From Paramoeba atlantica (taxonomy: Eukaryota > Protista > Discosea), in assembly GCA_977017575.1 (NCBI GenBank), contig CDRNVI010000115.1, forward strand, positions 1-20,666: a stretch of 20,666 nt of DNA, given 5' to 3'. This document shows positions 1,533 to 20,666 of the stretch, piece by piece. Under the pieces are notes generated by a model that ran no database searches, was not told the origin of the DNA, and saw only the letters and a list, made by a program, of their open reading frames with translations. A program made the translations under genes and the position numbers. Numbering within the stretch: the first letter of the stretch is position 1; the number at the start of each line of letters is the position of its first letter.

Positions 1533-2618
<1,086 letters not shown>

Positions 2619-2666
2619 TTCTATTTATTTCTTAATAAATCAACTTTTTTTCTCTTTTCTTTCTTT

Positions 2667-3858
2667 TTATATTATAGAAGATAAATACACTTTTCTAACA
2701 TAACTCATTTTTACACCACAAACACCATACCGCATAATTAAAATAAACTGATTATAACTTAAAGGAGAATTTATATTACTTGGTGAAATAGCACCAAATT
2801 GTTTAATAAACTTTTTATTTCTTAACTTTTTTTTATATCTCCCTGCATAACCTATTTTAAAACCTATAATACCTCTTTCATTTTTTAATTTATTATGTAA
2901 TAAATAAGCATAATGCTCTATTTTATAACCTACACGCAATCTTCATAAAATTAGCTTATATAAAGAATAAGTAGAATAATTTACTTCTTTTTTATCTATA
3001 AAATTAATTATAGGATTATTAACTTTAAAAATTTTTTTTATAAAAAACGATAAAAAATTTTTTAATATAAAAATAAATTTTTTATCTAAAGTTAAATAAT
3101 TAGTATTTTTAATATATTTTAATCTATTTAATCAACGATTAGTTGGAATTCTTAATAAATTAAATCATTTATATTTAAAAATAAAATTGTTTAATCTTTT
3201 ATTATTTTTATAAATATAAATATTTTTATATTTATAAAAATATTTAAAATTATTAAAATTATTTATTGATTTTTTTTTTCATATATTTTTAAATATTTTC
3301 TTTCTATAAAACCCTCTACAAGACTTATTATAAAATAAATAATATTTATTATTATGCATGTCTCAAAAAAAATAATTAAATCAAACATATTTTTTATTTT
3401 TATAAAAATTTTTTCTTTTACTATAAAAAAATTTACGTAAAAAATTTAATATATATTTTTTTTTTTTTTTTTCTTTTAAAAAATTATATTTTTTTTTTTC
3501 TTTTTGACTGTTTATACTTTAAAAAAGATTTAAAATATATATTTTTTTGACTGATTATAATATTTTTTTAATTTATATTTTTTTGACTTAATATCATTAA
3601 TTAAAAATTTATTATCATCATTTAATAAATTTAAATTTATTATCATCATTTTATATGTTTTAATTATATTTAACGGTAATATTTCTAAATTTAACTTGTT
3701 TCAATTAATTATAACTTTAATTCAATTATAAAATTTAATAATATTATAATCTTCTAAAAAAAATAATTTATAATTTTTTTTGTAATATTATTTCAAGACG
3801 AAATTCAATATTTACTTTTTGATAATCTATATGTTATTGGATTAACTAAATGTCCCAT
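2667..3858 (-). CDS. rps3: Mitochondrial ribosomal protein S3, with apparent frameshifts
   Basis: N-terminus MGHLVNPITYRLSKSKYWISSW (TGA=W); C-terminus GIIGFKIGYAGR...YGVCGVKMSYV. One frame is open from about 3518 to 2667 under code 4. The 5' part needs shifts at A/T runs (about 3774-3780 and within 3520-3650). Confidence 0.85.
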
Positions 3859-3860
3859 AA

Positions 3861-4139
3861 TTATTTTTTCTTTTTCTTTATACGTTTCTTTTTCTTTTTA
3901 TCTTTTATTAATATATTTTTTGAAAAAAAAAAATAATTAATCATATAATTAACCATACTATCTATAATTTTAATTGGAATAAAATAACGACCATTATATA
4001 CAGTTAATCTTTTATTAATCATATAATTTTTTATTTTAAAACCTTTTACTTTTAACTTTAATCAAATAAATTTATCTATTTTTGAAAAATTTAAAAAATA
4101 AATAATATTTTTAATATTTTTAATATTATTTAAATTCAT
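3861..4139 (-). CDS. rps19: Mitochondrial ribosomal protein S19
   Basis: Intact 93 codons under code 4: ...FIWLKLKVKGFKIKNYMINKRLTVYNGRYFIPIKIIDSMVNY.... VYNG motif; syntenic between rpl2 and rps3. Confidence 0.85.
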
Positions 4140-4872
4140 TTTTTTTTTTTTTTCTTAGTTGTAGGTACAAATTTTAATACACGTCTTGTAAAATTTGGAC
4201 AATCGACTCATGGAGAAGTTTTACCTCTACCACCACCATTAGGGTGATCTACACAATTTTTTGCTACACCTCTAACTGTTGATTTTTTTACCTAATCTTA
4301 TATTAACCACCCGCTTTACCTTTTTTTATTAAATTATGCCCTCTATTTGATACAATACCTATCATAGCTTTATTATATTTAAAAATTAATTTTTCTAAAC
4401 CAGAAGGAAATCTTATTAAATAATAATTTTCATTTATTTGTGATATTAATAAACAAAAAGAACCTGCAGATCTAGCTACTTTACTTCCTTTTTTTTTTTT
4501 TAATTCCATACAAGATATAAAAGAACCAAATTTTATATTTACTAAAGGATATGTAGAACCAACAATTTTATCTACTGAATTTAAAACCATACCTTCTTTC
4601 AAACCTTCGGCTGCTAAAATATAAGATAAAAATCCATTTTTATAACATATTAAAGCTATATTTGCAGATCTATTAGGATCATACTCAATTCTTAATACCA
4701 TTGCAGGTATATCAACGTAAGTTCTAAAAAAATCAATTAATCTATATTTCTTTTTAACTCTAGTTCCCTTTGATTTAACTGTTTTATGACCCATATTATT
4801 AACTCCTGCATAATTTTTTAAACCAAATGTTAAATATTTTATTGTTTTTGACTGTTTTTTCCTTTTTAACAT
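4130..4872 (-). CDS. rpl2: Mitochondrial ribosomal protein L2, with two apparent +1 indels near 4283-4308
   Basis: YRLIDF, RIEYDPNRSANIAL, ARSAG, GKAG. After removing one G (4307-4308) and one A (run 4283-4289) it continues [33 protein letters not shown]. Confidence 0.93.
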
Positions 4873-5293
4873 ATATTATTTTTTTCTTTTAATCTAATAT
4901 TAGTATAATTTGCTTCTATTAATCTATACATATCATTTTTTTTTTTTATAGATAAACCTTTATTATTATATACATCTATTAATTCATTTTGAATACGTTC
5001 TTGAAATTTTCGCTCAGTTCTAGAATTAATAGATCTAACTATTAATTTAACAGAATATGGTATAGAATCTTTTGATTTTAAATATGTGGTATTAATAATT
5101 TTTTACCTCCTACTTTTTTTAATATAACAAAACATTCTAATGAATATATTAGTTTCTATTTGTTTAAAAAAAGTATTTAAACAACCATATATTTTTTTTA
5201 TATTAATAAAAATTTTCTCTAAACTTAATATATTCGTTGTTTTTTTCCTTTTCTTATTAATAATTGTATTAAATATTTTATTCAATTATTCAT
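4866..5293 (-). CDS. rps7: Mitochondrial ribosomal protein S7, with about three apparent 1-nt indels
   Basis: MNNWIKYLIQLLIRKGKK..., LECFVILKKVGGKKLLIP and ERKFQERIQNELIDVYNNKGLSIKKKNDMYRLIEAN are S7 motifs spread over two frames. Syntenic between rps12 and rpl2. Confidence 0.8.
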
Positions 5294-5296
5294 CTT

Positions 5297-5695
5297 TTAA
5301 AATCTTTCCTTCCTTCTTTTTTTTTTCAAACCATATTTAGAACGACTTTTATTTCGTTCTTCACGTTCTCAATTACTAAAATCATATTTTCCTTTTATCA
5401 ATTTATAACGTACACCTGGAATATCTCTAGCACGTCCTCCTCTAATCATAACAACTGAATATTTTTGTAAATTATGACCTTGACCTGGTATAACTGCTAT
5501 TAATTTTTTACCTGTTGATAACCTTATTTTTGCTACTTTTCTTTTAGCGGAATTTGGTTTCTTTGGACTAACACTATTTCTAATTTCAATACAAACACCT
5601 CTTTTTTGTGGACAAGAATCTAACAAAAGAACTTTTGTACGTCTTTTTTTTTTTACTCTGCCTTTATTTCTTATTAATTGATTTAACGAAGCCAT
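5297..5695 (-). CDS. rps12: Mitochondrial ribosomal protein S12
   Basis: [31 protein letters not shown]. Reading the TGA at 5369 as Trp extends it to the conserved KSRSKYG; 133 codons. Confidence 0.97.
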
Positions 5696-6063
5696 AATTT
5701 ATATTTAAATATTATTAACGTATTAATAATTTTTTTTTCATAATTGAATTTCATTAATTCATTAAATAAATAATACTTTTTATTTAAATTTAATAACAAA
5801 CTATTATTTATTTGTTCTAAAGTTCCTTTACTATATAATTTATTTTTATATCATAAAAATAATAATTCATCATTATTTAAAAGATTAGTAAAATAATCTT
5901 TAAAATATTTCTTATTAATAATTAGAAAATATTTAATATTAACAAAAATTTTATATAATAAATTAATATTAGATAAATTCATTATGTTTAAATAAATTTG
6001 TTCAAAATTATTAAACGATTTATATTGATTTACATAAAAAAAAGCTATAATATTATTATTCAT
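5683..6063 (-). CDS. 127-codon ORF, candidate divergent ribosomal protein L10
   Basis: Open under code 4 (TGA at 5851 = W). Starts 7 nt after the rpl11 stop and overlaps the rps12 start. The position matches the bacterial rpl11-rpl1-rpl10...rps12 order. Sequence similarity is weak. Confidence 0.4.
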
Positions 6064-6069
6064 ATTTTT

Positions 6070-6525
6070 TTATATAATTTTATTAATTTGTAAATTTGAT
6101 ATAGAAAAAAAACTATTTTTAAATCGCAATTTTATTCAATTTTGATTTAAATTATTATATAATTTAAATCAATAATAATTACGCAATATAACAATATCAT
6201 ATAGACTTCTTAATGTAATTGAATTTTCCATAATATTTTTATTAGTTAAACTCATAATATTTCAAACCAATTTTAATAAAGTACTAAAAGAAGGTCCTTT
6301 TATTAAAAAAACAAATGATTTATCAGTATATAAAAATAATCTAACATATATTAATAAATCTTCCGATCTATATATAAAAGTTTGTTTATTAAATTCATTA
6401 CAAAATTCTTTGATTTTCTCTCTATTCATATAAGGACTTAAATTAGGTCCTATATTTAAATTTTCAAAAGCGGCACCTCTAGAATTAATTCTTAAATTAA
6501 AAAATCGATTTAATTTTTTTTGCAT
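6070..6525 (-). CDS. rpl11: Mitochondrial ribosomal protein L11
   Basis: IGPNLSP, EFCNEFNKQT, FVFLIKGPSFSTLL. Extends through TGA=W to TAA at 6070; 152 codons. Confidence 0.85.
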
Positions 6526-6558
6526 ATATATAATATTTAATATTATATTAATATTTGA

Positions 6559-7743
6559 TTAACGATCAACCTCCCCAAAAACTATATCTAAAGTACCTAT
6601 AATAGTAACAACGTCGGCTATCATATGTCCTTTTGATAATGTATCTAATAATTGTAAATGATTAAACCCTGGTGCTTTTATCTTACATCTTACCGGTCTA
6701 TTTAATCCTCCCGAAACTAAAAAAACACCAAATTCCCCTTTAGGAGCTTCTATAGATCTATAAACATCATTAAAAGGTATATTAACACCTTCTGTAAATA
6801 ATTTAAAATGATGTATTAAAGATTCCATAGAAAACTTCATTAATGATCTTGAAGGTATAGTTAATTTATTATTGTAATTTGAAATAGGACCTTCTTTTAA
6901 ATTATTTAAAAGTTGTAAAATTATTTTTAAACTCTCATGCATTTCTTTTAATCTAATTAAAAATCTATCAAAACAATCACCTTTATTTCCTATATAAGAT
7001 TTAAAATCAACTTCATTATATAATTCATAAGGTTCACTTTTTCTAATATCTCAAGGAATACCAGATCCTCTTAAAATAACTCCACTACAACCTCAAGTTT
7101 GTGCTTGATTATAATCTAATATACCTACATCAACTAAACGTTGCTTTCATATTCTATTTCTATTTAATAATTCTTCCATTTCCATTAAAGAGTTAATAAA
7201 ATTTTGTGTAAATTTATATAAATCATCACAAAAAGACATAGGTATATCTTGACTAATACCTCCTGGTCTTATATATGCTGCATGCATTCTAGCACCTGAT
7301 ACCCTTTCGTAAAATTCCATTAATTTTTCACGTTCTTCAAAAAGTCATAAAAAAGGTGTCATCGCTCCAACATCTAACGCATGTGTAGTTAACCCTAAAA
7401 TATGATTTAATATTCTAGTTATTTCACCAAAAATCATACGTATCATCTTTGCTCTTATAGGTACATTAGTAGAACTTAAAGTTTCTACAGCTAATGAATA
7501 ACAATGTTCTTGAGCCATCATAGATACATAATCTAATCTATCAAAATAAGGTAAAGCTTGTATAAAAGTCTTATATTCTATTAATTTTTCAGTACCTCTA
7601 TGTAATAATCCTATATGAGGATCAGCTCTTTCTATAATTTCACCATTTAATTCTAATATTAATCTTAAAACTCCATGAGCTGCTGGATGCTGTGGTCCAA
7701 AATTAATTGTAAAAGTTTTTATTTTTTTAAATATTTTATTCAC
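6559..7743 (-). CDS. nad7: NADH dehydrogenase subunit 7
   Basis: A single intact frame of 395 codons that joins two track ORFs. [51 protein letters not shown] falls at conserved Trp sites (PFLW, IWKQR, GIPWD). Confidence 0.99.
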
Positions 7744-7747
7744 GTTT

Positions 7748-8337
7748 TTAAAGTATATATTTTTTATTTAATAAAGGATTAGTAAAACTATATGATCTCA
7801 TATTTTGCATTAATTCAATAGGCTCATAAATCAAATATTGTTTATCTTCATCATACCTTATTTCTAAATAACCATTTAAAGGAAAATCTTTACGAAACGG
7901 ATAACCTTCAAAACCATAATCGGTTAATATACGTCTTAAATCTTTATGACCCATGAAAAAAATACCATACATATCTCAAACTTCACGTTCTAACCAATCG
8001 GCACCTAAATAAATATCAGTAATAGATCTTATAACATCTAATTTATCACAAGATACAGAAATAATTAATCTAGAATTATAATCTATACTTAATAAATTAT
8101 AATCAATTTCAAAACGTTTAGCTCTATCAATAAAATCACTACAGCAAATATCAGTTATTACCTTATATCTTAAAAAAGTATGCTTATTAAAAATATTTAA
8201 AACAAAACCTAAATAATCTTTTGATACTAATTTAATTTTAATAAATTCATCTGTTATTTTTATATGCGAAATATATTTAATTAGTAAATTTAATATATAA
8301 TTTACAGCATAATTATTACTATTTTTTTTAATAACAT
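7748..8337 (-). CDS. nad9: NADH dehydrogenase subunit 9
   Basis: [47 protein letters not shown]. The ATG at 8337 joins the main frame only if the A-run at 8322-8329 has one extra base; otherwise the start is non-ATG. Confidence 0.95.
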
Positions 8338-8349
8338 ATTTTTTTTTAT

Positions 8350-8673
8350 TTATAATATATATAATTTATATTTTTTAATATTACTAATTTTATATTTTAA
8401 AAATAGATTAAAAGGTGAAGTAACAAAATATAATTGATTTAATCGTATATTTTTATACCTATAATATAATAAAAAACTTTCCATATTTAAATATTGTTTT
8501 TTATTAAAATTTATAATTAATCCTTTAATATTACGTATATATACATTCTTATATAATCAATAAAAATACTTTAATTCAATAGATATATTATTATTTAATT
8601 TTTTTTTATATTCTATAGATAATAAACTTAAAAAAGAATTATCTAAATAATTTATAATTTTTTTCTTTTTCAT
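8350..8673 (-). CDS. 108-codon ORF, candidate divergent ribosomal protein S8
   Basis: Intact under code 4 and begins 3 nt after the rps11 stop. ISIELKYF...IRNIK...KKQY and LYFVTS align by eye with S8 LELTLKYF...VESIQ...LRIY and IAVVST. Confidence 0.5.
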
Positions 8674-8676
8674 TTA

Positions 8677-9258
8677 TTATTTTCTTCTTCTCTTTTTCTT
8701 TCTTATACCATTATGAGCTTTTGATTTTATAAAATTAATAAATTTTAAATTATAAGGTGTAGTCTCAAATAATTCTTTTAAATTTCTCAAAATTTTACGA
8801 GTATAATATTTATAAATTATATTTAATATGAATCATTTTTTCATATATAAATATTTAAAATCAATTTTTGAAGCTACAATTAATGAATTTAAAGCAAAAT
8901 ATGTTTTTTTTAATGATTTTTTATAATAAAAACCACATGAAAAATTTTTTATTACATTACCATTAATATGCGAAAAATTTAAATAAGTATTTTTTCTAAA
9001 TTTTAATATTAAATTAATAGTACAAAATTTCAAAGATAACCAATCTAATTTTGAACCCTTTAAAAAATTTTTTAGTATATTAATAAATAAATATCTTTTT
9101 TTAAAAAAAGATAATTTTGCTGCATATATATACTTGCTTTTTAATTTTATATTAAACCTTTTTTTATATAATCAAGTAACTGAAGGTAATTTAAATCTAT
9201 TAATTTTTATTAATTTAATTTTTCTATTTTTTATTAAACTTTCTTTTTTTTCAAACAT
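8677..9258 (-). CDS. rps11: Mitochondrial ribosomal protein S11 with basic N-terminal extension
   Basis: KNTYLNFSHINGNVIKNFSCG, SLKKTYFA, C-terminal TPYN...AHNGIRKKKRRRK. The frame is open from ATG 9258. An in-frame ATG at 9348 is separated from it by one TAA in a homopolymer-rich stretch. Confidence 0.8.
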
Positions 9259-9375
9259 ATTTGTATTATTTCTTTCCTTAATTTTTCTATTTTTTTAAAC
9301 TTTTTCTATTTTTTTAATTTTCTTTCTTTTTCTTTTTAATGATTCCATATATAATTAAATTTAATATAAGTTTTA

Positions 9376-9448
9376 TGTGGAGAATTGGGTTTGAACCAAT
9401 GACCTAAAGCTTTTCAGGCTTTCGCTCTACCTACTGAGCTACCCCCAA
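9376..9448 (-). tRNA. trnF: tRNA-Phe(GAA)
   Basis: Cloverleaf; anticodon stem AAAGC/GCTTT; acceptor TTGGGGG/TCTCCAC with U1xC72 mismatch. Confidence 0.95.
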
Positions 9449-9481
9449 AAACTTTTTTTAATTACAAATTATTTTTTTATA

Positions 9482-9570
9482 AGGTAAGTATGGGATTCGA
9501 ACCCATGATATTATATGAATAATATATCGATTTAGCAGATCGACACCTTCAACCACTCGGTCAACTCACC
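9482..9570 (-). tRNA. trnS: tRNA-Ser(GCU), long variable arm
   Basis: Stem TCGAT/ATCGA, loop CTGCTAA; acceptor fully paired. Confidence 0.95.
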
Positions 9571-9579
9571 TAAAATATG

Positions 9580-9690
9580 ATTTGTATTAATATAAATTAT
9601 ACACTCTTATAAAAAATTTTTACGAGAATATAATTTAATATATAATATTTTAAAGGGGTTCGATAAGCTTACCTTTAAAAAAATATAAAT
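9580..9690 (-). ncRNA. Candidate divergent mitochondrial 5S rRNA
   Basis: 111 nt between rns and trnS. Terminal helix (9 bp, 1 mismatch), a 9-bp hairpin whose loop ends in CGAAC like 5S loop C, and a second 9-bp hairpin with an internal mismatch. AT-richness makes chance pairing possible. Confidence 0.45.
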
Positions 9691-9694
9691 TTAT

Positions 9695-11222
9695 TTTCCA
9701 TCCAGCGGCAGGTTCCCCTACCACTACCATGTTACGACTTCACCCTGATTACTATCAATACATTCAAATTAAATAATTAATAATATTTTATTAAAAATTA
9801 ATTATCTCCAATAGATTAAAAATAATTAATAAATATAAATTATTAATTATAATTTTTCCAATATTAACAACTTTCTTGGCGTGACGGGCAGTGTGTACTA
9901 GATTTGGATCCCATTTCACCGAAACATTCTAATCGATTACTGACGATTTCAACTTCATATTTTTATTTTCAAAAAATAATCCGAACTATAATAATCTTTA
10001 TAATTTAAATAAATTTCACAATTTATTTTTTTTTTGTAATTATTTTTGTAACACGTGTGTAGCCCAATTCATCAGGGCCATACCTACTTGACGTCCTCCT
10101 CTATTTCATTTAATATATAATTAATAATACAATATAATAAAATATAATAATATAACATATAATAATATAACATATAATAATATAATAATATATCATATAT
10201 TTTATTATATTGTAAGGATTACACTCGTTACAGGACCTAACCATACATATCACTACACGAGCTGACGACAGCCATGCGACACCTGCTTAAAAAAATTATA
10301 TAAAGTTTACTATATTTATTATAATTTTTTTCAATCTAGAATTGGTAAGATTTTATGCGTTATATCAGATTAAACCACATGTTCCACCGTTCGTACCAAA
10401 TCTCAGCCACTTTCTTTGAGTTCAAATCTTGCGATCATACTCCCCAGGCGGGATGCTTACGCGTTAGCTAAACCACAAAAATATTTCCTACAGTTAGCAT
10501 CCATCGTTGTCTGTATGGACTACAAGGGTCTCTAATCCTCTTTGATACCCATACCTTCGTACTTTAGTGTCAGTATAAATCTAATATATAGCTTTCACCT
10601 TCTGATAGTCTCCATAGTATCATAAAATTTCACCTTTCCTCTATGAATACTATATATCTGAATAATACTCTTAGTTTACTAATATATAATTTATTCATTA
10701 TTACTAATAACGCCTTTAAAATTATATTATTAAAAAATAAACCACTTATCATACGCTTTACGCCCAGTAATGCTGAGTAACACCCGCATCCTCCGTATCA
10801 CCGCGACTGCTGGCACGAAGTTAGTCGATGCTTATTCTTAAGTTTAACCTCATTATGCTCACTTAAACAAGAATTTTTCAATAAATTGTCATAATTCAGG
10901 TAGTTTCGCTGAATCAAGCTTTCGCTCATTGTTCAATATTCCTCACTGCTGCCTCCTAATGGAACTTGGGCCTTTTCTCATTCCCAATGTGGTTGTACCT
11001 CCTTCTAAGATCAACTAAGAATTATCGGCTTGTTAGTCTATTACACCTCCAACTACCTAAATCTTTATAAACCAGTTTATAATATAAACATAATTATAAG
11101 TCCCGTTTTTATATATTACTCACCCTTACGCCATTAATTTTAAATTTTAAATTTTAATTGACTAGCATGTGTTAAGCGAACTACTAGCATTTACTCAAAG
11201 CCAGAATAAAACATACAAGTAT
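9695..11222 (-). rRNA. rns: Mitochondrial small-subunit rRNA (ends approximate)
   Basis: Minus-strand conserved blocks CTTAACACATGC, GTGCCAGCAGTCGCGGT, CATGGCTGTCGTCAGCTCGTG, GAAGTCGTAACATGG; no anti-Shine-Dalgarno CCUCC at the 3' end. Confidence 0.97.
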
Positions 11223-11284
11223 TTATATATAATATATTATATATTATATAATTTACATAAATTTTTTCCTTTTTTTTTATATTA

Positions 11285-11373
11285 AGATTATGGTGGGATT
11301 CGAACCCACGGTATAATTAAAATTATACGATCCTTTTCAAGAGGATTACTTTAAACCACTCAGCCACATAAAC
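11285..11373 (-). tRNA. trnS: tRNA-Ser(UGA), long variable arm
   Basis: Stem ATCCT/AGGAT; acceptor GTTTATG/CATAATC with U2xU71. Confidence 0.95.
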
Positions 11374-11387
11374 TTATTTTTATACAA

Positions 11388-11460
11388 CGACCTGGGCAGG
11401 ATTCGAACCTACATCTGATTGGTTAACAGCCAATTATTTTACCATTGAAACTACCAAGTA
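11388..11460 (-). tRNA. trnN: tRNA-Asn(GUU)
   Basis: Stem ATTGG/CCAAT; acceptor TACTTGG/CCAGGTC with U1xC72. Confidence 0.95.
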
Positions 11461-11474
11461 TTGTTTTACAAATT

Positions 11475-11497
11475 ACAAACTTTAATTTAAAGTTTGT
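11475..11497. repeat. Perfect 10-bp inverted repeat
   Basis: acaaacttta-att-taaagtttgt, in the spacer between rnl and trnN. Confidence 0.7.
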
Positions 11498-11584
11498 TGT
11501 TTTATTACATATAATATTTTCAAAATATTATATATTTTATTTTTTCTTATATAGAAATTTTTTTTCTTTTTTCTTTTTTCTTTT

Positions 11585-13330
11585 TATAAATTAGATTGAT
11601 TCTTAAAATTATTTAGCTCAATCCTTCACAGGACTTACACACATAACTTAATTTCGTAATAATCTTTTACAATCAATACTTTTAAAATATTTTAGGATAA
11701 TCTTCTTATATCTGATTGAATTCAATAATTATATTATTAATATTTAGCTACTCGACTATGCAATTATAATTACAACCGATTTACCAGTGATATTCCTTCT
11801 CCAGTCCTTTCGTACTAAGATAAGATTCCTTCAATTTTAATTAATTAATAGTAGATAGGAACCGAACTGTCTCACGACGTTCTGAACCCAATTCAGGTGC
11901 CACTTTAAAAGGCGAACAGCCTTACCCTTGGAACATTTTTCTTAACCAGGATGTGACCAATCGACATCGAGGTGCCAAACAACCCCGTCGATATCTTCTC
12001 TCCGGAGTCATAAGCCTGTTATCCCTAGCGTACCTTTTATCCGTTGAGCAACATATTTTCCATTCAATTATATTGGATCACTATGACCGACCTTTTTAAT
12101 AAAAAAGATCTCTGTTTGATTTGTAAATCTCACAGTTAAGTAATTTTTAGCCATTACACGCCAAAATTTTCTAATAAAATTTTAATTACCTTTGTACACC
12201 TCAGTTACATTTTATGAGGTCTCCGCCCCAGAGAAACTACCAAATATATTCTGTCAATAAAAAATTATTAAGTTTTAAAAATTAAATTCAAACTATTCCA
12301 AGATTATCTAAACAATTAACTAATATTAAAATTTTAAAACGATTAGTTTGTATCCTATAAATTTAATTTTTAATAACAAAATATAACTGCAGTAAAGGTG
12401 CATAGGGTCTTTCCGTCTAGCTATTAATACGCTGCATCTGCACAGAGAATTCAATTTCGCTAATATAATACCGGAGACAGTAGGATAGTCGTTACACCAT
12501 TCATGCAAGGTCGAAACTTACTCGACAAGGAATTTCGCTACCTTCGAACCGTTATATTTACAGCTGCCGTTTACTATTCATTCTATATAAAGCTAATACA
12601 TTAAATAATATATTAACAATAACAATTACCTTTATAGCACCGGGCAGGTGTCAGACCTTATACATCATTAATTAATTTTGCAAAGTCCTGTGTTTTTGTT
12701 AAACAGTCGCCATCCTCTATTCTGTTACATTTTTATATACATATAATGTATATATAAAAATACTCTTTCTCCCGAAGTTACAGAGTTAATTTGCCGAGTT
12801 CCTTCGATATTATTCAATTATTCATCTTAGTATTCTCTACTAATCCTCCTGTGTAGGATTTAGTACGGTTTTATATATTAGTATTCTTTCTTGAATTTAT
12901 TTTTTAAATATTTCAATCAATATATTCGAATATATCACACAATGTTTTACTATATTTATTAAAATTTGATCCTAAAATATTTAAAAAATAAACTGTCATC
13001 TACTAATAACGTTAAAAATATTATGTTATCCTTATAACTCTTTAACTACCCTTCAATTATTACTATCATATTCATTTTAGGGACCGATTAACCTAATGCA
13101 GTTTATCTTGACATTAGAAACCTTAGATTTTTAGATGATAATGTTTATAACATTATTTTTGCTACTTATGCCAGTATATTCAATTTTAATTTTATAATTT
13201 AACAATTTTTTTTTTCTTTTATAAAACGTTCTACTACCAATATTATTATTTTAAATAATATTTTATAATTTCGGTATAATATTTATTTTCGTTATATTTT
13301 TGTATATAAATATCTATCAATAGTGAGCTG

Positions 13331-13364
<34 letters not shown>

Positions 13365-14365
13365 CTACCTCCTATTCATTGTTAATATTATAATATACTT
13401 TTTAACTTAATATTAATTTAGAAACCTTAATTTATAATCTGGGCTCTTTCCCTCTTGATATACAACCTTTTCGCCATATATCGAAATTAAAATTTTTACT
13501 TTATATTTATTTGAAGTTCATATGGATTCAACAACCCAATATGGTAGCTCTACCTTATATAAATTTAAATTTCATCTCTACTTAAATAGATTTCGTAGAA
13601 AACCAGCTATCTCCAAGTTTGATTAGCCTTTCACCCCTAATCATAGGTCATCCCAATATATTGCAACATAAACGGGTTCGATCCTCCATTAATATTTAAT
13701 TAACTTCAATCTGCCCATGACTAGATCACTTGGTTTCGGGTCTAATTATTATAACTATAAATATATTAATTACAATTAAAAAATTTAATAATTTTTTATT
13801 TTGCTACAATAATTAACTCACTGACCCATTATGCAAAAGGTACCTTTTAACATATAATTATTTATGCTTAAAGTGCTATTTAGTATTAAATTTCAAAATC
13901 TATTTCAACATTTTTAAAAAATTTCTTTTCATCTTTCCTTCACAGTACTTTTTCACTATCGCTCAATAATAATTCTTTAGCCTTTAGAGATGGTACTCTA
14001 ATCTTCAAACAAATTTAGTTTTTATTTTACTCAAAACCAATAATAATAATAAAAAATAACAAGACTATTACTTATTTTGTTAATTATTCCAAATTATTAT
14101 ATTTTTTATTTATATTATTGTTTAATTTAGCTATTTTATTTTCGCTCGCCACTACTAATAATATCATTTTTATTTTTTTTAACTAATTACTAAGATGATT
14201 CAATTCATTAGATATTCTTTAATTATTTAATTTAATTGGGTTTTCCCTTTAGATACGTGAATATTGAAAAATTATTATTATTTTACTTTCACATTACGTT
14301 TTAAAACGTCTATAAACTTATTATTGGCAAGATATCCGTTTAATACTATTTTAAATTTATAAAAA
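11585..14365 (-). rRNA. rnl: Mitochondrial large-subunit rRNA (ends approximate), no intron seen
   Basis: Peptidyl-transferase blocks GGCACCTCGATGTCG, GGGTTCAGAACGTCGTGAGACAGTTCGG, CGCTAGGGATAACAGGCT, GCGAAATTCCTTGTC; sarcin-ricin AGTACGAAAGGAC; about 2.8 kb, colinear with 23S. Confidence 0.97.
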
Positions 14366-14421
14366 AATTTTAAAATGATTTGTTTAAAAATTATTCAACA
14401 TTATTATATATTTTAATCAAA

Positions 14422-14502
14422 TGGAAGTGGTAGGATTCGAACCTACGATGTATAAATACAATAGATTTACAGTCTACCGCTTTACCGCTCAGCCACACTA
14501 TA
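14422..14502 (-). tRNA. trnY: tRNA-Tyr(GUA)
   Basis: Stem GTAGA/TCTAT; long variable arm; acceptor TATAGTG/CACTTCC with mismatches at pairs 1, 2 and 3. Confidence 0.95.
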
Positions 14503-14510
14503 AAAAATTA

Positions 14511-14584
14511 TAATTGGTATAGGACTCGAACCTATATCTAATGATTTAGAAGATCATAATTTTAACCAATTAAACTAACCAATT
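14511..14584 (-). tRNA. trnR: tRNA-Arg(UCU)
   Basis: Stem ATGAT/ATCAT; acceptor AATTGGT/ACCAATT fully paired. Confidence 0.95.
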
Positions 14585-14611
14585 AAATACAAAACAACAA
14601 AAATAGGTTGA

Positions 14612-14851
14612 TTAAGTATATAAGATTAAGAAAGCCATCATTAGGGCAAACAGAGCAATTGCTTCTGTTAATGCGAAACCTAATAAAGTATAACCAAATA
14701 AATCGTTTTTAATTGTAGTATTACGTGAATAAGCAATTAAAAAAGCTCCAAAAACTATTCCTATACCTACTCCAGCACCTGCTAAACCTATAGTAGCTAA
14801 ACCAGCACCTACTTTTTTTGCAAAAATTAACATAATTTCTTGTCCTGCCAT
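14612..14851 (-). CDS. atp9: ATP synthase subunit 9 (c)
   Basis: [32 protein letters not shown]. Confidence 0.99.
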
Positions 14852-14904
14852 TTTCGAAAATATTTTTATACATATATTTTACTAATTAATAAAAATTCAA
14901 AATT

Positions 14905-14926
14905 GATTACATATTCAAATGTAATC
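14905..14926. repeat. Perfect 8-bp inverted repeat upstream of atp9
   Basis: gattacat-attcaa-atgtaatc. Confidence 0.6.
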
Positions 14927-14950
14927 CATAATAATATTTACGTAATTATA

Positions 14951-15023
14951 TAAGAAGAGTAGGACTCGAACCTACATCTGTGGCTCATGAGACCACTGAG
15001 TTAACCTATTACTCCATCTTAAA
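14951..15023 (-). tRNA. trnM: tRNA-Met(CAU)
   Basis: Stem GTGGT/GCCAC; fMet-like D arm GAGT...ACTC but no triple G-C pairs; acceptor TTTAAGA/TCTTCTT with mismatches at pairs 1-3. Confidence 0.85.
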
Positions 15024-15041
15024 AAATAATTAACTCATCGT

Positions 15042-15124
15042 TATTGGAGGAGGGACTCGAACCCTCAAGCCTAAAAGGCAATAGATTTTAAGTCTATCAT
15101 GTTTACCAATTCCATCACACCATT
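15042..15124 (-). tRNA. trnL: tRNA-Leu(UAA), long variable arm
   Basis: Stem ATAGA/TCTAT; acceptor AATGGTG/CTCCAAT with A2xA71 and U6xU67. Confidence 0.95.
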
Positions 15125-15182
15125 AAAAAATAATTAATAAAAATTTTTGTATATGAAAATAAAATATTATCTCTTATACAAA

Positions 15183-15197
15183 CCCCCCAAACCCCCC
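15183..15197. repeat. C6-A3-C6 (minus strand G6-T3-G6) motif in a non-coding spacer
   Basis: ccccccaaacccccc; also readable as (aaacccccc)x2 from 15180. An isolated GC island in an AT-rich spacer. Confidence 0.85.
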
Positions 15198-15298
15198 TTA
15201 TTATATGTGACAAATAATATACTTAAATCAGTGTATAATAGATTTCAAAAATTTACAAAAAAATTTTATTAAATTAAATTAATACGGATAAAATAATT

Positions 15299-15370
15299 TC
15301 ATTTCTAAGGGATTTGAACCCTTATTTCTGCTGTGAAAGAGCAATGTCCTAACCATTAGACGAAGAAAAA
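15299..15370 (-). tRNA. trnE: tRNA-Glu(UUC)
   Basis: Stem TTGCT/AGCAG; acceptor TTTTTCT/AGAAATG with U1.G72 and U2xU71. Confidence 0.93.
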
Positions 15371-15670
15371 TAAATCATATATTATTAAAGTAAGATATAT
15401 CTAAAATAAATAATCATATTAATTTACTAATTTTTTATTTTATTAAAAAAATAAAATCTTTTAAATTACTATAATTATTTATTTTATAATTTTTTCTCTT
15501 TTTAAAAAAATTTTAAGTAAAATATGTATGTTTTATGACTGTTATTTCATATGGTAAATGTACATTTATCATAAATTGATATAATAGATATAATAGATAA
15601 TATTTTATATTTTATATACAAAACATCTTGATTATATAGTAATAAAATAAACATATTTTATTATATTTTA

Positions 15671-15744
15671 TGCGGAGGAAGGGATTCGAACCCTCATCTT
15701 TTAACTCGACAGGTTAAAGCTTTAGCCTATTAAGCTACCTCCTT
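15671..15744 (-). tRNA. trnD: tRNA-Asp(GUC)
   Basis: Stem TTAAC/GTTAA; acceptor AAGGAGG/CCTCCGC with A1xC72 and A2xG71. Confidence 0.95.
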
Positions 15745-15757
15745 GTTATTATAATTA

Positions 15758-15828
15758 TCAGGACGATAGGATTTGAACCTATAACGTCTACACCCAAAAT
15801 AGATATTTTACCTTTAAACTACATCCTT
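15758..15828 (-). tRNA. trnP: tRNA-Pro(UGG)
   Basis: Stem TCTAT/GTAGA, loop TTTGGGT; acceptor AAGGATG/CGTCCTG with A1xG72. Confidence 0.93.
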
Positions 15829-15862
15829 ATAAAAAATATTTTTTCTTTTTTTATACATACAA

Positions 15863-15936
15863 TACAGATGAGGGGACTCGAACCCCTAAAATTTAGTGCC
15901 TAAAACTAATATGTCTACCAATTCCATCACATCTAT
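15863..15936 (-). tRNA. trnL: tRNA-Leu(UAG) with short variable loop
   Basis: Stem TTAGT/ACTAA, loop TTTAGGC, variable region only ATTTT; acceptor paired with U2.G71. Confidence 0.9.
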
Positions 15937-16002
15937 CTTTACAAATTAATAAAAAAATTTTAATAAAATATATATTTTATTAATTTTATTATTCTTAATT
16001 TA

Positions 16003-16075
16003 GGTAAGAAATGAGACTTGAACTCATACTATCGAAATCACAACTCGATGTGCTAACCTATTACACCATTCCATA
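16003..16075 (-). tRNA. trnH: tRNA-His(GUG)
   Basis: Stem TCGAG/TTCGA; C73; acceptor TATGGAA/TTCTTAC with mismatches at pairs 1-3; genomic -1 base is A. Confidence 0.93.
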
Positions 16076-16081
16076 TTTTTA

Positions 16082-16154
16082 TAGATAGTATAGGGCTCGA
16101 ACCTATAACCCTCAGCTTAAAAGGCCGATGCTCTACCAATTGAGCTAACTATTT
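16082..16154 (-). tRNA. trnK: tRNA-Lys(UUU)
   Basis: Stem TCGGC/GCTGA; acceptor AAATAGT/ACTATCT with A2xC71. Confidence 0.95.
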
Positions 16155-16163
16155 TTTTATTTA

Positions 16164-16236
16164 TAACCCCAGATAGACTCGAACTATCAATTTGCACTTA
16201 TCAAATGCATGTTTTAACCAATTAAACTATAGGTAT
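16164..16236 (-). tRNA. trnI: tRNA-Ile(GAU)
   Basis: Stem TGCAT/GTGCA; acceptor ATACCTA/TGGGGTT with U2xU71 and A3xG70. Confidence 0.95.
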
Positions 16237-16263
16237 TTATTATATTTATATTAAATTTAAAAA

Positions 16264-16336
16264 AGTTAGGAAACGGACTCGAACCGATATCTATAGATTT
16301 GCAATCAATTATAATAACCATTTATACTATCCTTAA
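16264..16336 (-). tRNA. trnC: tRNA-Cys(GCA)
   Basis: Loop TTGCAAA; U73; acceptor TTAAGGA/TCCTAAC with U1xC72 and A3xA70; single U-U mismatches in the anticodon and T stems. Confidence 0.9.
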
Positions 16337-16349
16337 AAAAAATTTTAAT

Positions 16350-16421
16350 ACTTAGGAGTAGGACTCGAACCTACACGATTTGCTGCCAAAAAACAATACT
16401 TTACCTTTCAGTCACCCTATT
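16350..16421 (-). tRNA. trnQ: tRNA-Gln(UUG)
   Basis: Stem TTGTT/AGCAA; acceptor AATAGGG/TCCTAAG with A1xG72 and A2xA71. Confidence 0.92.
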
Positions 16422-16453
16422 TTATTATATTTAATTATATCATCTATAATTAA

Positions 16454-16525
16454 CACAGTTGATAGGATTTGAACCTATGTCATTAGTTTTGAAGACTAAT
16501 ATGTTAACCACTACACTACAACTAT
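16454..16525 (-). tRNA. trnW: tRNA-Trp(UCA), reads UGA and UGG
   Basis: Stem TTAGT/ACTAA, loop CTTCAAA; G73; acceptor paired with U2.G71. Confidence 0.95.
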
Positions 16526-16526
16526 T

Positions 16527-16600
16527 TATCCCCCATAGGACTTGAACCTATATCAGTACCATTATGAGTGATATGTCTTAACCAATTAGACCAGAGGGAT
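16527..16600 (-). tRNA. tRNA with CAU anticodon, probably Ile(CAU, lysidine type); elongator Met not excluded
   Basis: Stem TATCA/TGGTA, loop CTCATAA; acceptor ATCCCTC/GGGGGAT paired. It is the second CAU tRNA in the window, and ATA codons are very frequent. Confidence 0.8.
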
Positions 16601-16616
16601 TATATTAGTAAAATTA

Positions 16617-18278
<1,662 letters not shown>

Positions 18279-18285
18279 TGTAAAT

Positions 18286-19155
18286 TTATACTAAATAAAA
18301 AATATTCTCTTTTCCATCTTTTAATTCTAATATAAGAGGAGCTACCATATCACTACCTCAACAATATATAATCATATATAAAAATAATCATACTACATCA
18401 ACAAAATGTCAATATCAAGCTGCAAATTCAAAACCTAAATGGTGATTACGTGAAAAATGTGATAAATATATACGATAAGTAGTCATACTTAAAGCTATAG
18501 TACCAACAATAACGTGAAAACCATGTAAACCAGTACAACAAAAAAAAGTTGAACCATAAACACCATCTGAAATATCAAAAGCAGAAACACTATATTCATA
18601 AAACTGAAAAGATAAAAATAATACAGCAAATACAATTGTAACAACCATAGTTAATAAACATTTATCCATATATCCTTGTTTTAAATATAAATGTGCTAAA
18701 GTTAAAGTAGCACCTGATGTTAATAATAATAAAGTATTTAATAAAGGAATACCAAAAGGATCCATAATTATTTCACTCATTCCTACGGGAGGTCAACTAC
18801 AATTTAATTCTACTGTAGGAAAAATACTTGAATGAAAAAAAGCTCAGAAAAAAGCTACAAAAAGCATTACTTCTGAAAAAATAAAAAGTAAAAAGCTTAT
18901 AATTAAGCTTGATTGAACTTGTTTAGTATGATGACCTTCATAACTTGCTTCAATTACTATATCTCTAAATCATAAACATATAATAAATATTACCATAATT
19001 AAACCTATAAAAAATACAGGTACACCATAATAAAATCCTTGAAAAAAAGTTACTAAACCTACTGGCATTGATAATGCAAACATAGATAATAATAAAGGTC
19101 ATGGACTAATTGTTACAATATGTCAAAAATGAAAATGTTTAAATTTATTAATCAT
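18286..19155 (-). CDS. cox3: Cytochrome c oxidase subunit 3
   Basis: HFWHIVTISPWP, EGHHTKQVQ, LFIFSEVMLF, TGLHGFHV, AAWYWHFVDVVW; 290 codons intact. Confidence 0.98.
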
Positions 19156-19158
19156 ATT

Positions 19159-20178
19159 TTATATACTATTTTCTTTATTTAAAAATTCTTTTATTGATAA
19201 ATTAAGTTGATCTTGTCATCAATCATAGAAACCTCTAGTAAAAACAATAGCATTACTTCCATCTTCATAAAAATAATGATAATAATTTATTAGTTGATTA
19301 AACGAATTATTTCTAAAATCTTCACAAGCTAAACATAAATATGTAATATAATCTAATTTAGTTATACTATATATTTCAATAGGCATAAAACCATGATTTA
19401 CACCACATAATTCACTACATTGACCATAAAAATGACCAATTCTATCTATAAATAAATTTACCTGATTTAACCTACCAGGACAAGCATCTATTTTTATACC
19501 TAATGAAGGGACAGCTCAACAATGTAATACATCACTAGCTGTTACATATACTTTTATAAAAGTATCTACAGGCAATACTACTGGATTTGTAGTTTCTAAT
19601 AAACGTAAACCTTTATCTGATAATTCATTAGTAGGTACCATATAACTATCGAAACTAAATTCAGCTATATTATTTGAAAAAGAACCTCCTAACTCTATAT
19701 TTGTATTACTCGCAATATCATATACAATTTGAGGATTATCTAAACTAAATACAAAAGAATAAGATCAATATCACTGATGTCCTGTAACTTTCATTGTTAA
19801 CAGACTTACACCAGATATTTCCATAGCATATAATAAAGCAAAAGACGGTATTGCTATAGATATTAATATTAAACTTGGTATTATAATTCAAAGAGTTTCT
19901 AATAATGTATTATGCGAAATTCTTACATTATAAAAATTTTTTACTTTATTAAAAATCTCTAAATTACTATTATTATTTATTGTAAATGTACTTAAAGTGA
20001 AATAAATCATAGCAAAAGTAAATACAACAATAAAAACTAAAAAAAACATAATATGATTATGCAAATCAATAATTCCTCGAGCTATAGTATTAGCTGGGTA
20101 TTGAAAACCTAATTGTCCAGGTAAAGCATAATCTGCCTCTAAATTTGAAAAAATTATATTATTTACAAAATTAATCAT
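19159..20178 (-). CDS. cox2: Cytochrome c oxidase subunit 2 with internal insertion and C-terminal extension
   Basis: GHQWYWSY, DVLHCWAVPSLG, CuA motif [15 protein letters not shown]; 340 codons intact under code 4. Confidence 0.98.
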
Positions 20179-20183
20179 TTTTT

Positions 20184-20666
20184 TTAAATATTAATACATC
20201 ATTTATTATAAGAGCCTAAAAAACTTTCTAAAAAGTTATAATTTAGACCAACTTTATCAGGATGAATTACATCATTTAAAAATTGAAAAAAGGTAATCAA
20301 AATAATTTTTTACTTTCTAAAACCATTTCTTCAAATACACCATTTATTTTATTTATAGCTAATTTATCAAAAAAACCTTTAGAACCTGCAAAAACTGATA
20401 ATAAAGATAAATCTAATGAATAATTATTAAATCTACTTTGTACAAATAATTCAGTTAATCTATAACCACGATCTAATAATTGTTGAGTAACAGGATCTAT
20501 ATCACAACCTAAACTAGCAAAACTTTCAACTTCTCTAAATTGGGCTAAACCAACCTTTAAAGAACCTGCTAATGATTTCATTAATTTAGGTTGTGCAGCT
20601 CCACCAACTCTACTAACCGATAAACCAACACTTACTGCTGGTCTTATACCTGAATAAAATTGTTCA
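20184..20666 (-). CDS. atp1: ATP synthase F1 alpha subunit, 5'-partial
   Basis: GIRPAVSVGLSVSRVGGAAQ, LAQFREVESFA, LLDRGYRLTELF. As written it stops at 20276; one extra T in the run at 20278-20282 extends it to TAA at 20184, next to cox2. Confidence 0.96.

Follow-up and report, generated by a model that had tools for sequence, protein, structure and literature searches.

Acceptor-stem mismatches confined to the first three pairs predict 5' editing of most tRNAs encoded in a mitochondrial genome of amoebozoan type

Mitochondrial editing of the 5' ends of transfer RNAs (tRNAs) is said to have been described in Acanthamoeba castellanii by Lonergan and Gray in 1993. In this amoeba, 12 of 15 tRNAs are mismatched within acceptor pairs 1-3, and the 5' nucleotides that are removed are replaced by a template-dependent 3'-5' polymerase (PMC4284800, PMC12566451). 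Editing that follows the same rule, with repair by Thg1-like proteins (TLPs), is known from Acanthamoeba, Dictyostelium, Polysphondylium, Physarum and chytrids (PMC4284800, PMC5041481, PMC12566451). In Dictyostelium discoideum, DdiTLP3 is the 5'-editing polymerase and DdiTLP2 adds G-1 to mitochondrial tRNA-His (PMC5041481), while the editing of U:G pairs varies between D. discoideum and Polysphondylium pallidum (PMC5041481, PMC4284800). Among the Heterolobosea, 5' editing has been predicted from the genes in Acrasis kona (8 of 11) and Naegleria (8 of 20) (PMC4202320). Mismatches at pairs 1-3 also result from the editing of tRNA 3' ends in the jakobid Seculamonas ecuadoriensis (PMC3590771). Here we analyze the acceptor stems of 19 tRNA genes found in a stretch of 20,666 nucleotides (contig CDRNVI010000115.1 of the Paramoeba atlantica assembly GCA_977017575.1), referred to below as the window, and compare them with these systems.

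ARAGORN and the Rfam model RF00005 agree on a set of 19 tRNA genes, all of which lie on the minus strand between positions 9376 and 16600 (Table 1). Their acceptor stems were read in canonical numbering, in which positions 1-7 immediately precede U8-N9 and positions 66-72 immediately follow the 5-bp T stem. In this register, the mismatches at positions 1 to 7 number 9, 10, 5, 0, 0, 1 and 0, so that 24 of the 57 pairs at positions 1-3 are mismatched vs one of the 76 pairs at positions 4-7 (Fisher exact p = 8e-10), and 14 of the 19 genes (74%) are affected. The mismatched 5' base is A or T in all 24 cases (T:C 6, T:T 7, A:C 3, A:A 4 and A:G 4). Of the 24 pairs whose template base is G or C, 13 are mismatched vs 11 of the 33 whose template base is A or T, an excess that AT drift predicts. 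The lone acceptor mismatch beyond the first three positions, U6:U67 of tRNA-Leu(UAA), is also present in both other assemblies read at this gene. An earlier reading of this DNA from its letters (the sequence-only reading) had arrived at the same picture, and the renumbering exactly reproduced its counts for both parts of the stem, its gene-by-gene list of mismatched pairs, the restriction of the mismatched 5' bases to A or T and the U:G pairs at Glu position 1, Leu(UAG) position 2 and Trp position 2. The stem drawings produced by ARAGORN were rejected: they sometimes add an eighth acceptor pair, and they shift the His and Cys stems by one base and give them a 3-nucleotide connector. The canonical register is supported by an alignment of tRNA-His with three relatives, in which the acceptor strand runs into the D stem without a gap.

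Apart from these mismatches the genes look sound. The Rfam scores of all 19 range from 39.8 to 69.4 bits vs a threshold of 29, and ARAGORN draws a full cloverleaf for each of them, which indicates otherwise intact, canonical genes rather than pseudogenes. None of the 19 genes encodes CCA, none overlaps another, and neighbours lie 1-300 nucleotides apart. The mitochondrial circle to which most of the window belongs (see below) measures 39.4 kb, and the 35.2 kb of it that were read contain no tRNA gene beyond the 19; the remaining 4.2 kb consist of nad11 and its neighbours. Additional calls made by a relaxed ARAGORN search were rejected as being of low quality and located within ribosomal RNA (rRNA) or protein genes.

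Judging by the gene sequences, the mismatched 5' ends of the 14 tRNAs are very probably handled by the known pathway of mitochondrial 5' tRNA editing. Once its 5' end has been processed, each tRNA would lose its first one, two or three nucleotides, as far as the deepest mismatch (about 30 nucleotides over the 14 tRNAs), and a nuclear-encoded, mitochondrially targeted Thg1-like 3'-to-5' polymerase would refill them with 3' positions 72-70 as the template; CCA would be added after this fill-in. Because the encoded 5' bases would be discarded, they would be free to drift, and under the mutation pressure of the genome they would drift toward A and T. The predicted substrates are many different tRNAs, and the predicted changes span T:C, A:C, T:T, A:A and A:G mismatches. 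In tRNA-His, G-1 would additionally be placed opposite C73. The base at position -1 of this gene (16076) is A, and A at -1 together with C73 is also found in the tRNA-His genes of three related contigs (L005, L010, L092); since G-1 is not encoded, it would have to be added after transcription, opposite C73.

The resemblance to A. castellanii is close. In both, the mismatches fall at pairs 1-3 alone and affect a similar share of the tRNAs, any base change may be needed, with pyrimidine-to-purine changes being frequent, and the 3' half would serve as the template. Both genomes also use UGA for Trp, carry their genes on one strand and have tRNA clusters beside rnl and rns. The two differ in that editing has been experimentally demonstrated in A. 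castellanii and is predicted here, in gene order and tRNA set, and in the separate cox1 and cox2 of the present genome; the sequences are distant. The mismatch rule is likewise that of D. discoideum and P. pallidum, and a C73-containing tRNA-His without an encoded G-1 suits the templated addition known there (PMC5041481, PMC4284800), although the enzymes of these two species have been identified and tested, whereas that of the present system is predicted. In chytrid and monoblepharid fungi (Spizellomyces punctatus and others), 5' editing is similarly limited to the first three positions (PMC4284800), but the fungal mitochondrial genomes have far fewer tRNA genes and the genome described here is of the amoebozoan type. 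With the Heterolobosea, the present case shares a prediction made from gene sequences, the restriction to pairs 1-3 and an AT-rich, gene-rich mitochondrial DNA; they belong to another supergroup, however, and the fraction affected here resembles that of Acrasis and exceeds that of Naegleria. The sequence-only reading had assigned the pattern to the type of 5' editing found in Acanthamoeba, Dictyostelium and chytrids, and all the predictions that this assignment makes at the sequence level hold; from them we infer the corrected RNAs and the enzyme.

A comparison set was assembled by an atp9 scan of JGI metagenome contigs, which yielded 80 mitochondrial loci, and the same script was applied to it. 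In 375 tRNA genes from 57 unrelated loci of this set, the mismatches at positions 1 to 7 number 12, 3, 0, 4, 10, 16 and 1, i.e., 1.3% at positions 1-3 (15 of 1125) and 2.1% at positions 4-7. The guanine plus cytosine (GC) content of positions 1, 2 and 3 in these controls is 65, 72 and 61% on the 5' strand vs 52, 69 and 59% on the 3' strand, far above that of the window and without a one-sided loss of GC from the 5' strand. The mismatch signature is limited to the loci nearest the window (L005, L006, L009, L010, L011 and L030, plus L002, L008 and L089). In the window and its related contigs taken together (79 tRNA genes, 10 contigs), the mismatches number 53, 34, 33, 0, 0, 1 and 0, with 120 at positions 1-3 and one at positions 4-7, and the GC content of positions 1, 2 and 3 is 13, 19 and 25% on the 5' strand vs 66, 35 and 42% in the 3' partners. 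The signature extends to more distant contigs that share this gene order (L091, L092), where it is found in 6 of 10 and 4 of 6 genes.

Two observations on these relatives stand apart from the mismatch counts. Contig L091 (GCA_000441915.1, KE527165.1; 39,681 bp) is filed in the assembly of the carnivorous plant Genlisea aurea and is a mitochondrial genome of the same protist clade; its rps12 is named a plant hypothetical protein, and its source organism probably lives in the traps of the plant. The window itself has no tRNA-Ala gene, and the tRNA-Ala genes of three related contigs (L010:61-131, L030:4053-4127 and L011:10149-10221) all have U70, with C, A or G at position 3. Strict templated repair of these tRNAs would give A3:U70, with the loss of the G3:U70 pair that specifies alanine identity.

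The mismatched genes might instead be tolerated unedited, or might be decaying and replaced by imported cytosolic tRNAs, and import must indeed exist. Within the 35.2 kb covered of the 39.4-kb circle (L085, L095), the 19 tRNA genes leave the codons for Ala, Gly, Val and Thr and the CGN codons for Arg unread, so that import of several cytosolic tRNAs is required. Decay, however, would strike all stems, yet positions 4-7 are nearly free of mismatches and all 19 genes score above the Rfam threshold. Neither decay nor tolerance accounts for the confinement of mismatches to positions 1-3 across the 79 genes of the 10 related contigs or for the continued conservation of position 72. Tolerance would, moreover, leave no usable acceptor end on the tRNAs with triple terminal mismatches (Tyr, His and one tRNA with a CAU anticodon). 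We consider this explanation improbable.

Which of the two strands would serve as the template can be judged from their composition and conservation. In the window, the GC content of the 5' positions 1-3 is 14% (8 of 57) vs 42% (24 of 57) for their 3' partners, while positions 4-7 are balanced (40 of 76 on the 5' side vs 39 of 76 on the 3' side); the spacers of the tRNA cluster have 11% GC. The pairwise identity of orthologues across contigs is 0.71 at position 72 vs 0.38 at position 1. In tRNA-Trp, positions 72-70 (T-G-T) and G73 are constant in three lineages, where the 5' triplet is ATA, TTA or TTT, and the 3' ends of tRNA-Pro (G72), tRNA-His (UACC) and also tRNA-Ala are kept across lineages. 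Because the 5' bases are spacer-like and position 72 is conserved when position 1 is not, the 3' strand would be the template: it appears to carry the information, and the encoded 5' bases appear dispensable. Such an asymmetry offers a means of telling 5' from 3' editing by sequence alone.

These observations bear directly on 3' editing, in which nucleotides are cut from the 3' strand and resynthesised with the 5' strand as the template. Editing of this kind is known from the jakobid Seculamonas and from animal mitochondria whose tRNA genes overlap, and it can place mismatches at the very same pairs. In Seculamonas, the 3' strand is replaced in two tRNAs only, whereas here the 3' strand is conserved and the 5' strand drifts. 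Neither a conserved 5' template strand nor the overlap of tRNA genes that often accompanies 3' editing is found in the window. If the spacer-like 5' bases were the template, the acceptor ends would consist of A and U only, with the loss of C72 and G72. This alternative is very improbable.

The mismatches are reproduced in other assemblies, which were found by searching for proteins identical to those of atp9, rpl2 and a small open reading frame (ORF). Three contigs of the same DNA are present in ENA, all from public metagenomes: ERZ24900291 ctg3923c (39,429 bp, marked circular), ERZ24894578 ctg2721l and ERZ26167977 ctg8206. They are 99.86-99.93% identical to the window over positions 2540-20666. 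All 19 acceptor stems are unchanged in the contigs from ERZ24900291 and ERZ24894578, and so are all six tRNA genes within the part read of the ERZ26167977 contig. The differences from the window are a substitution in rnl (12052), a 3-nucleotide indel in rns (9932) and single-base indels, mostly in homopolymers, and none of them falls within a tRNA gene; four indels are the sole differences between the window and one Logan contig. Relative to the ENA contigs, the differing positions of the window are 4890, 5079, 5114, 5231, 5316, 8321, 9932, 12052 and 20285. Because of the indels, rps7 is not an open frame in the window, and rps12 and rpl2 seem shortened; rpl2 has 189 residues here vs 247 elsewhere.

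An artefact, whether errors of sequencing or assembly or a dead mitochondrial DNA copy, might be suspected because the window is chimeric (positions 1-2540 are bacterial-like) and because short indels disrupt rps7, rps12 and rpl2, but this is the least probable explanation of all, given that the tRNA genes are base-for-base equal elsewhere (19 in two assemblies including a closed circle, six in a third) and that the mismatches are position-specific substitutions and not indels. The sequence-only reading had argued that random sequencing error would not concentrate at positions 1-3 and that loss of the mismatches from polished reads would refute it; a check through the other public assemblies bears the argument out, with the mismatches persisting in identical stems of independent assemblies.

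Several points weigh against 5' editing as the reading of this locus, or narrow it. The mismatch count of tRNA-His depends on the register, with mismatches at positions 1-3 in the canonical numbering vs positions 1 and 4 in that of ARAGORN. Positions 1-3 retain 30 Watson-Crick pairs vs 16.2 expected from the composition of the spacers (P about 1e-5), which suggests that the 5' bases are not fully randomised and that some selection or recent ancestry persists. The observations themselves concern genes: the mismatch pattern, its reproducibility, its restriction to one lineage and the asymmetry of the two strands; it is from these that we infer correction at the RNA level and the enzyme responsible. 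Finally, the top matches in word searches with rpl2 and rps12 are metagenome, Logan and GCA contigs, which do not pin down the lineage; atp9 is conserved too strongly to be of use for this purpose.

As judged by sequence, positions 2540-20666 of the window belong to a circular mitochondrial genome that measures 39.4 kb and is of the amoebozoan type. Amoebozoan mitochondrial genomes are circular, 29-58 kb in length, with genes on one strand, clustered trn genes (13-25), atp1 and nad11, and many rps and rpl genes (PMC7194472). The features of this type found here include a circular contig of 39,429 bp, the location of every called gene on one strand and 19 trn genes in a few clusters. The full circle carries nad11, atp1, cox1-3, cob, atp6, atp9, nad genes and a long block of ribosomal-protein genes from rps12 to rpl6. 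Gene content and architecture are consistent with the amoebozoan type and are not exclusive to amoebozoans. With UGA read as Trp, the minus strand of the window encodes the end of atp1, cox2, cox3, cox1, atp9, nad9, nad7, rpl11, rps12, rpl2, rps19 and rps3; protein queries were stop-free pieces or genes only. The use of UGA for Trp is indicated by the presence of a tRNA with anticodon UCA and by the near absence of UGG.

Over the first 3 kb of the window the GC content is 32-40%, with 39-40% across the first 2 kb, and beyond this part it falls to about 10-32%. Positions 1-2540 are non-mitochondrial and hold bacterial-type genes, namely those for a xylose-isomerase-like TIM barrel protein, a QSregVF_b protein and the N-terminal 248 residues of a CTP synthase that is truncated at the junction. 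Agreement with the mitochondrial circle ends at position 2540, just within rpl16, and the other assemblies continue through rpl16; the two parts have most likely been joined as a chimera in this assembly. Two long spacers, 15126-15298 (173 nucleotides) and 15371-15670 (300 nucleotides), interrupt the otherwise tight tRNA cluster, and neither contains a tRNA, Rfam or ORF call. Just downstream of rns, where a 5S rRNA gene might be sought, Rfam at its gathering threshold likewise gives no call at positions 9580-9690. The region of this mitochondrial genome that separates the ribosomal-protein block from cob contains an ORF of 1,159 residues (L087:15258-18737, also L095:10319-13798), which gave no Pfam hit; the related contig L093 has a frame of 538 residues at this site.

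Table 1. tRNA and rRNA genes of the window, with the state of each acceptor stem and the 5' changes predicted for the tRNAs
Gene	Positions	Strand	Acceptor stem and remarks
tRNA-Phe(GAA)	9376..9448	-	T1:C72 mismatch; predicted U1 to G
tRNA-Ser(GCU)	9482..9570	-	no mismatch; G:U at position 4
rns (small-subunit rRNA)	9690-11222		identified by Rfam
tRNA-Ser(UGA)	11285..11373	-	T2:T71 mismatch; predicted U2 to A
tRNA-Asn(GUU)	11388..11460	-	T1:C72 mismatch; predicted U1 to G
rnl (large-subunit rRNA)	11582-14362		identified by Rfam
tRNA-Tyr(GUA)	14422..14502	-	mismatches at 1-3; predicted UAU to GGA; Rfam match covers model positions 4-67
tRNA-Arg(UCU)	14511..14584	-	entirely paired
tRNA with CAU anticodon (Met or Ile-type)	14951..15023	-	mismatches at 1-3; predicted UUU to AAG; Rfam match covers model positions 4-67
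tRNA-Leu(UAA)	15042..15124	-	A2:A71 mismatch; predicted A2 to U; also internal U6:U67
tRNA-Glu(UUC)	15299..15370	-	T2:T71 mismatch; predicted U2 to A; U1:G72 wobble, C1 if repair is templated
tRNA-Asp(GUC)	15671..15744	-	mismatches at 1 and 2; predicted AA to GC
tRNA-Pro(UGG)	15758..15828	-	A1:G72 mismatch; predicted A1 to C (C1:G72)
tRNA-Leu(UAG)	15863..15936	-	no mismatch; U2:G71 wobble
tRNA-His(GUG)	16003..16075	-	mismatches at 1-3; predicted UAU to GUA; Rfam match covers model positions 5-66
tRNA-Lys(UUU)	16082..16154	-	A2:C71 mismatch; predicted A2 to G
tRNA-Ile(GAU)	16164..16236	-	mismatches at 2 and 3; predicted UA to AC
tRNA-Cys(GCA)	16264..16336	-	mismatches at 1 and 3; predicted UUA to GUU
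tRNA-Gln(UUG)	16350..16421	-	mismatches at 1 and 2; predicted AA to CU; Rfam match covers model positions 3-68
tRNA-Trp(UCA), reads UGA (labelled SeC by ARAGORN)	16454..16525	-	no mismatch; U2:G71 wobble
tRNA with CAU anticodon (Met)	16527..16600	-	entirely paired

The mechanism proposed for these tRNAs is already known, and the genome represents a new and well-documented case of it that will not surprise a specialist. There is a slim chance that the genome belongs to a large lineage, represented by more than 10 environmental contigs of 37-40 kb with a shared gene order, one of them within a plant assembly, in which 5' tRNA editing has never been described and tRNA-His would be rebuilt over four positions (G-1 plus positions 1-3) by templated 3'-5' synthesis. 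Should this lineage lie outside Amoebozoa, or the enzyme not be Thg1-like, the case would represent a further independent origin of 5' editing. For annotation, the finding means that the tRNA genes are to be taken as real despite their broken acceptor stems. It adds to the short list of lineages with predicted or demonstrated mitochondrial 5' tRNA editing, with a signature that spans a clade of uncultured mitochondrial genomes from metagenomes, and it predicts that the nuclear genome of the host would encode at least one mitochondrial 3'-5' polymerase and probably also a G-1-adding activity for tRNA-His.

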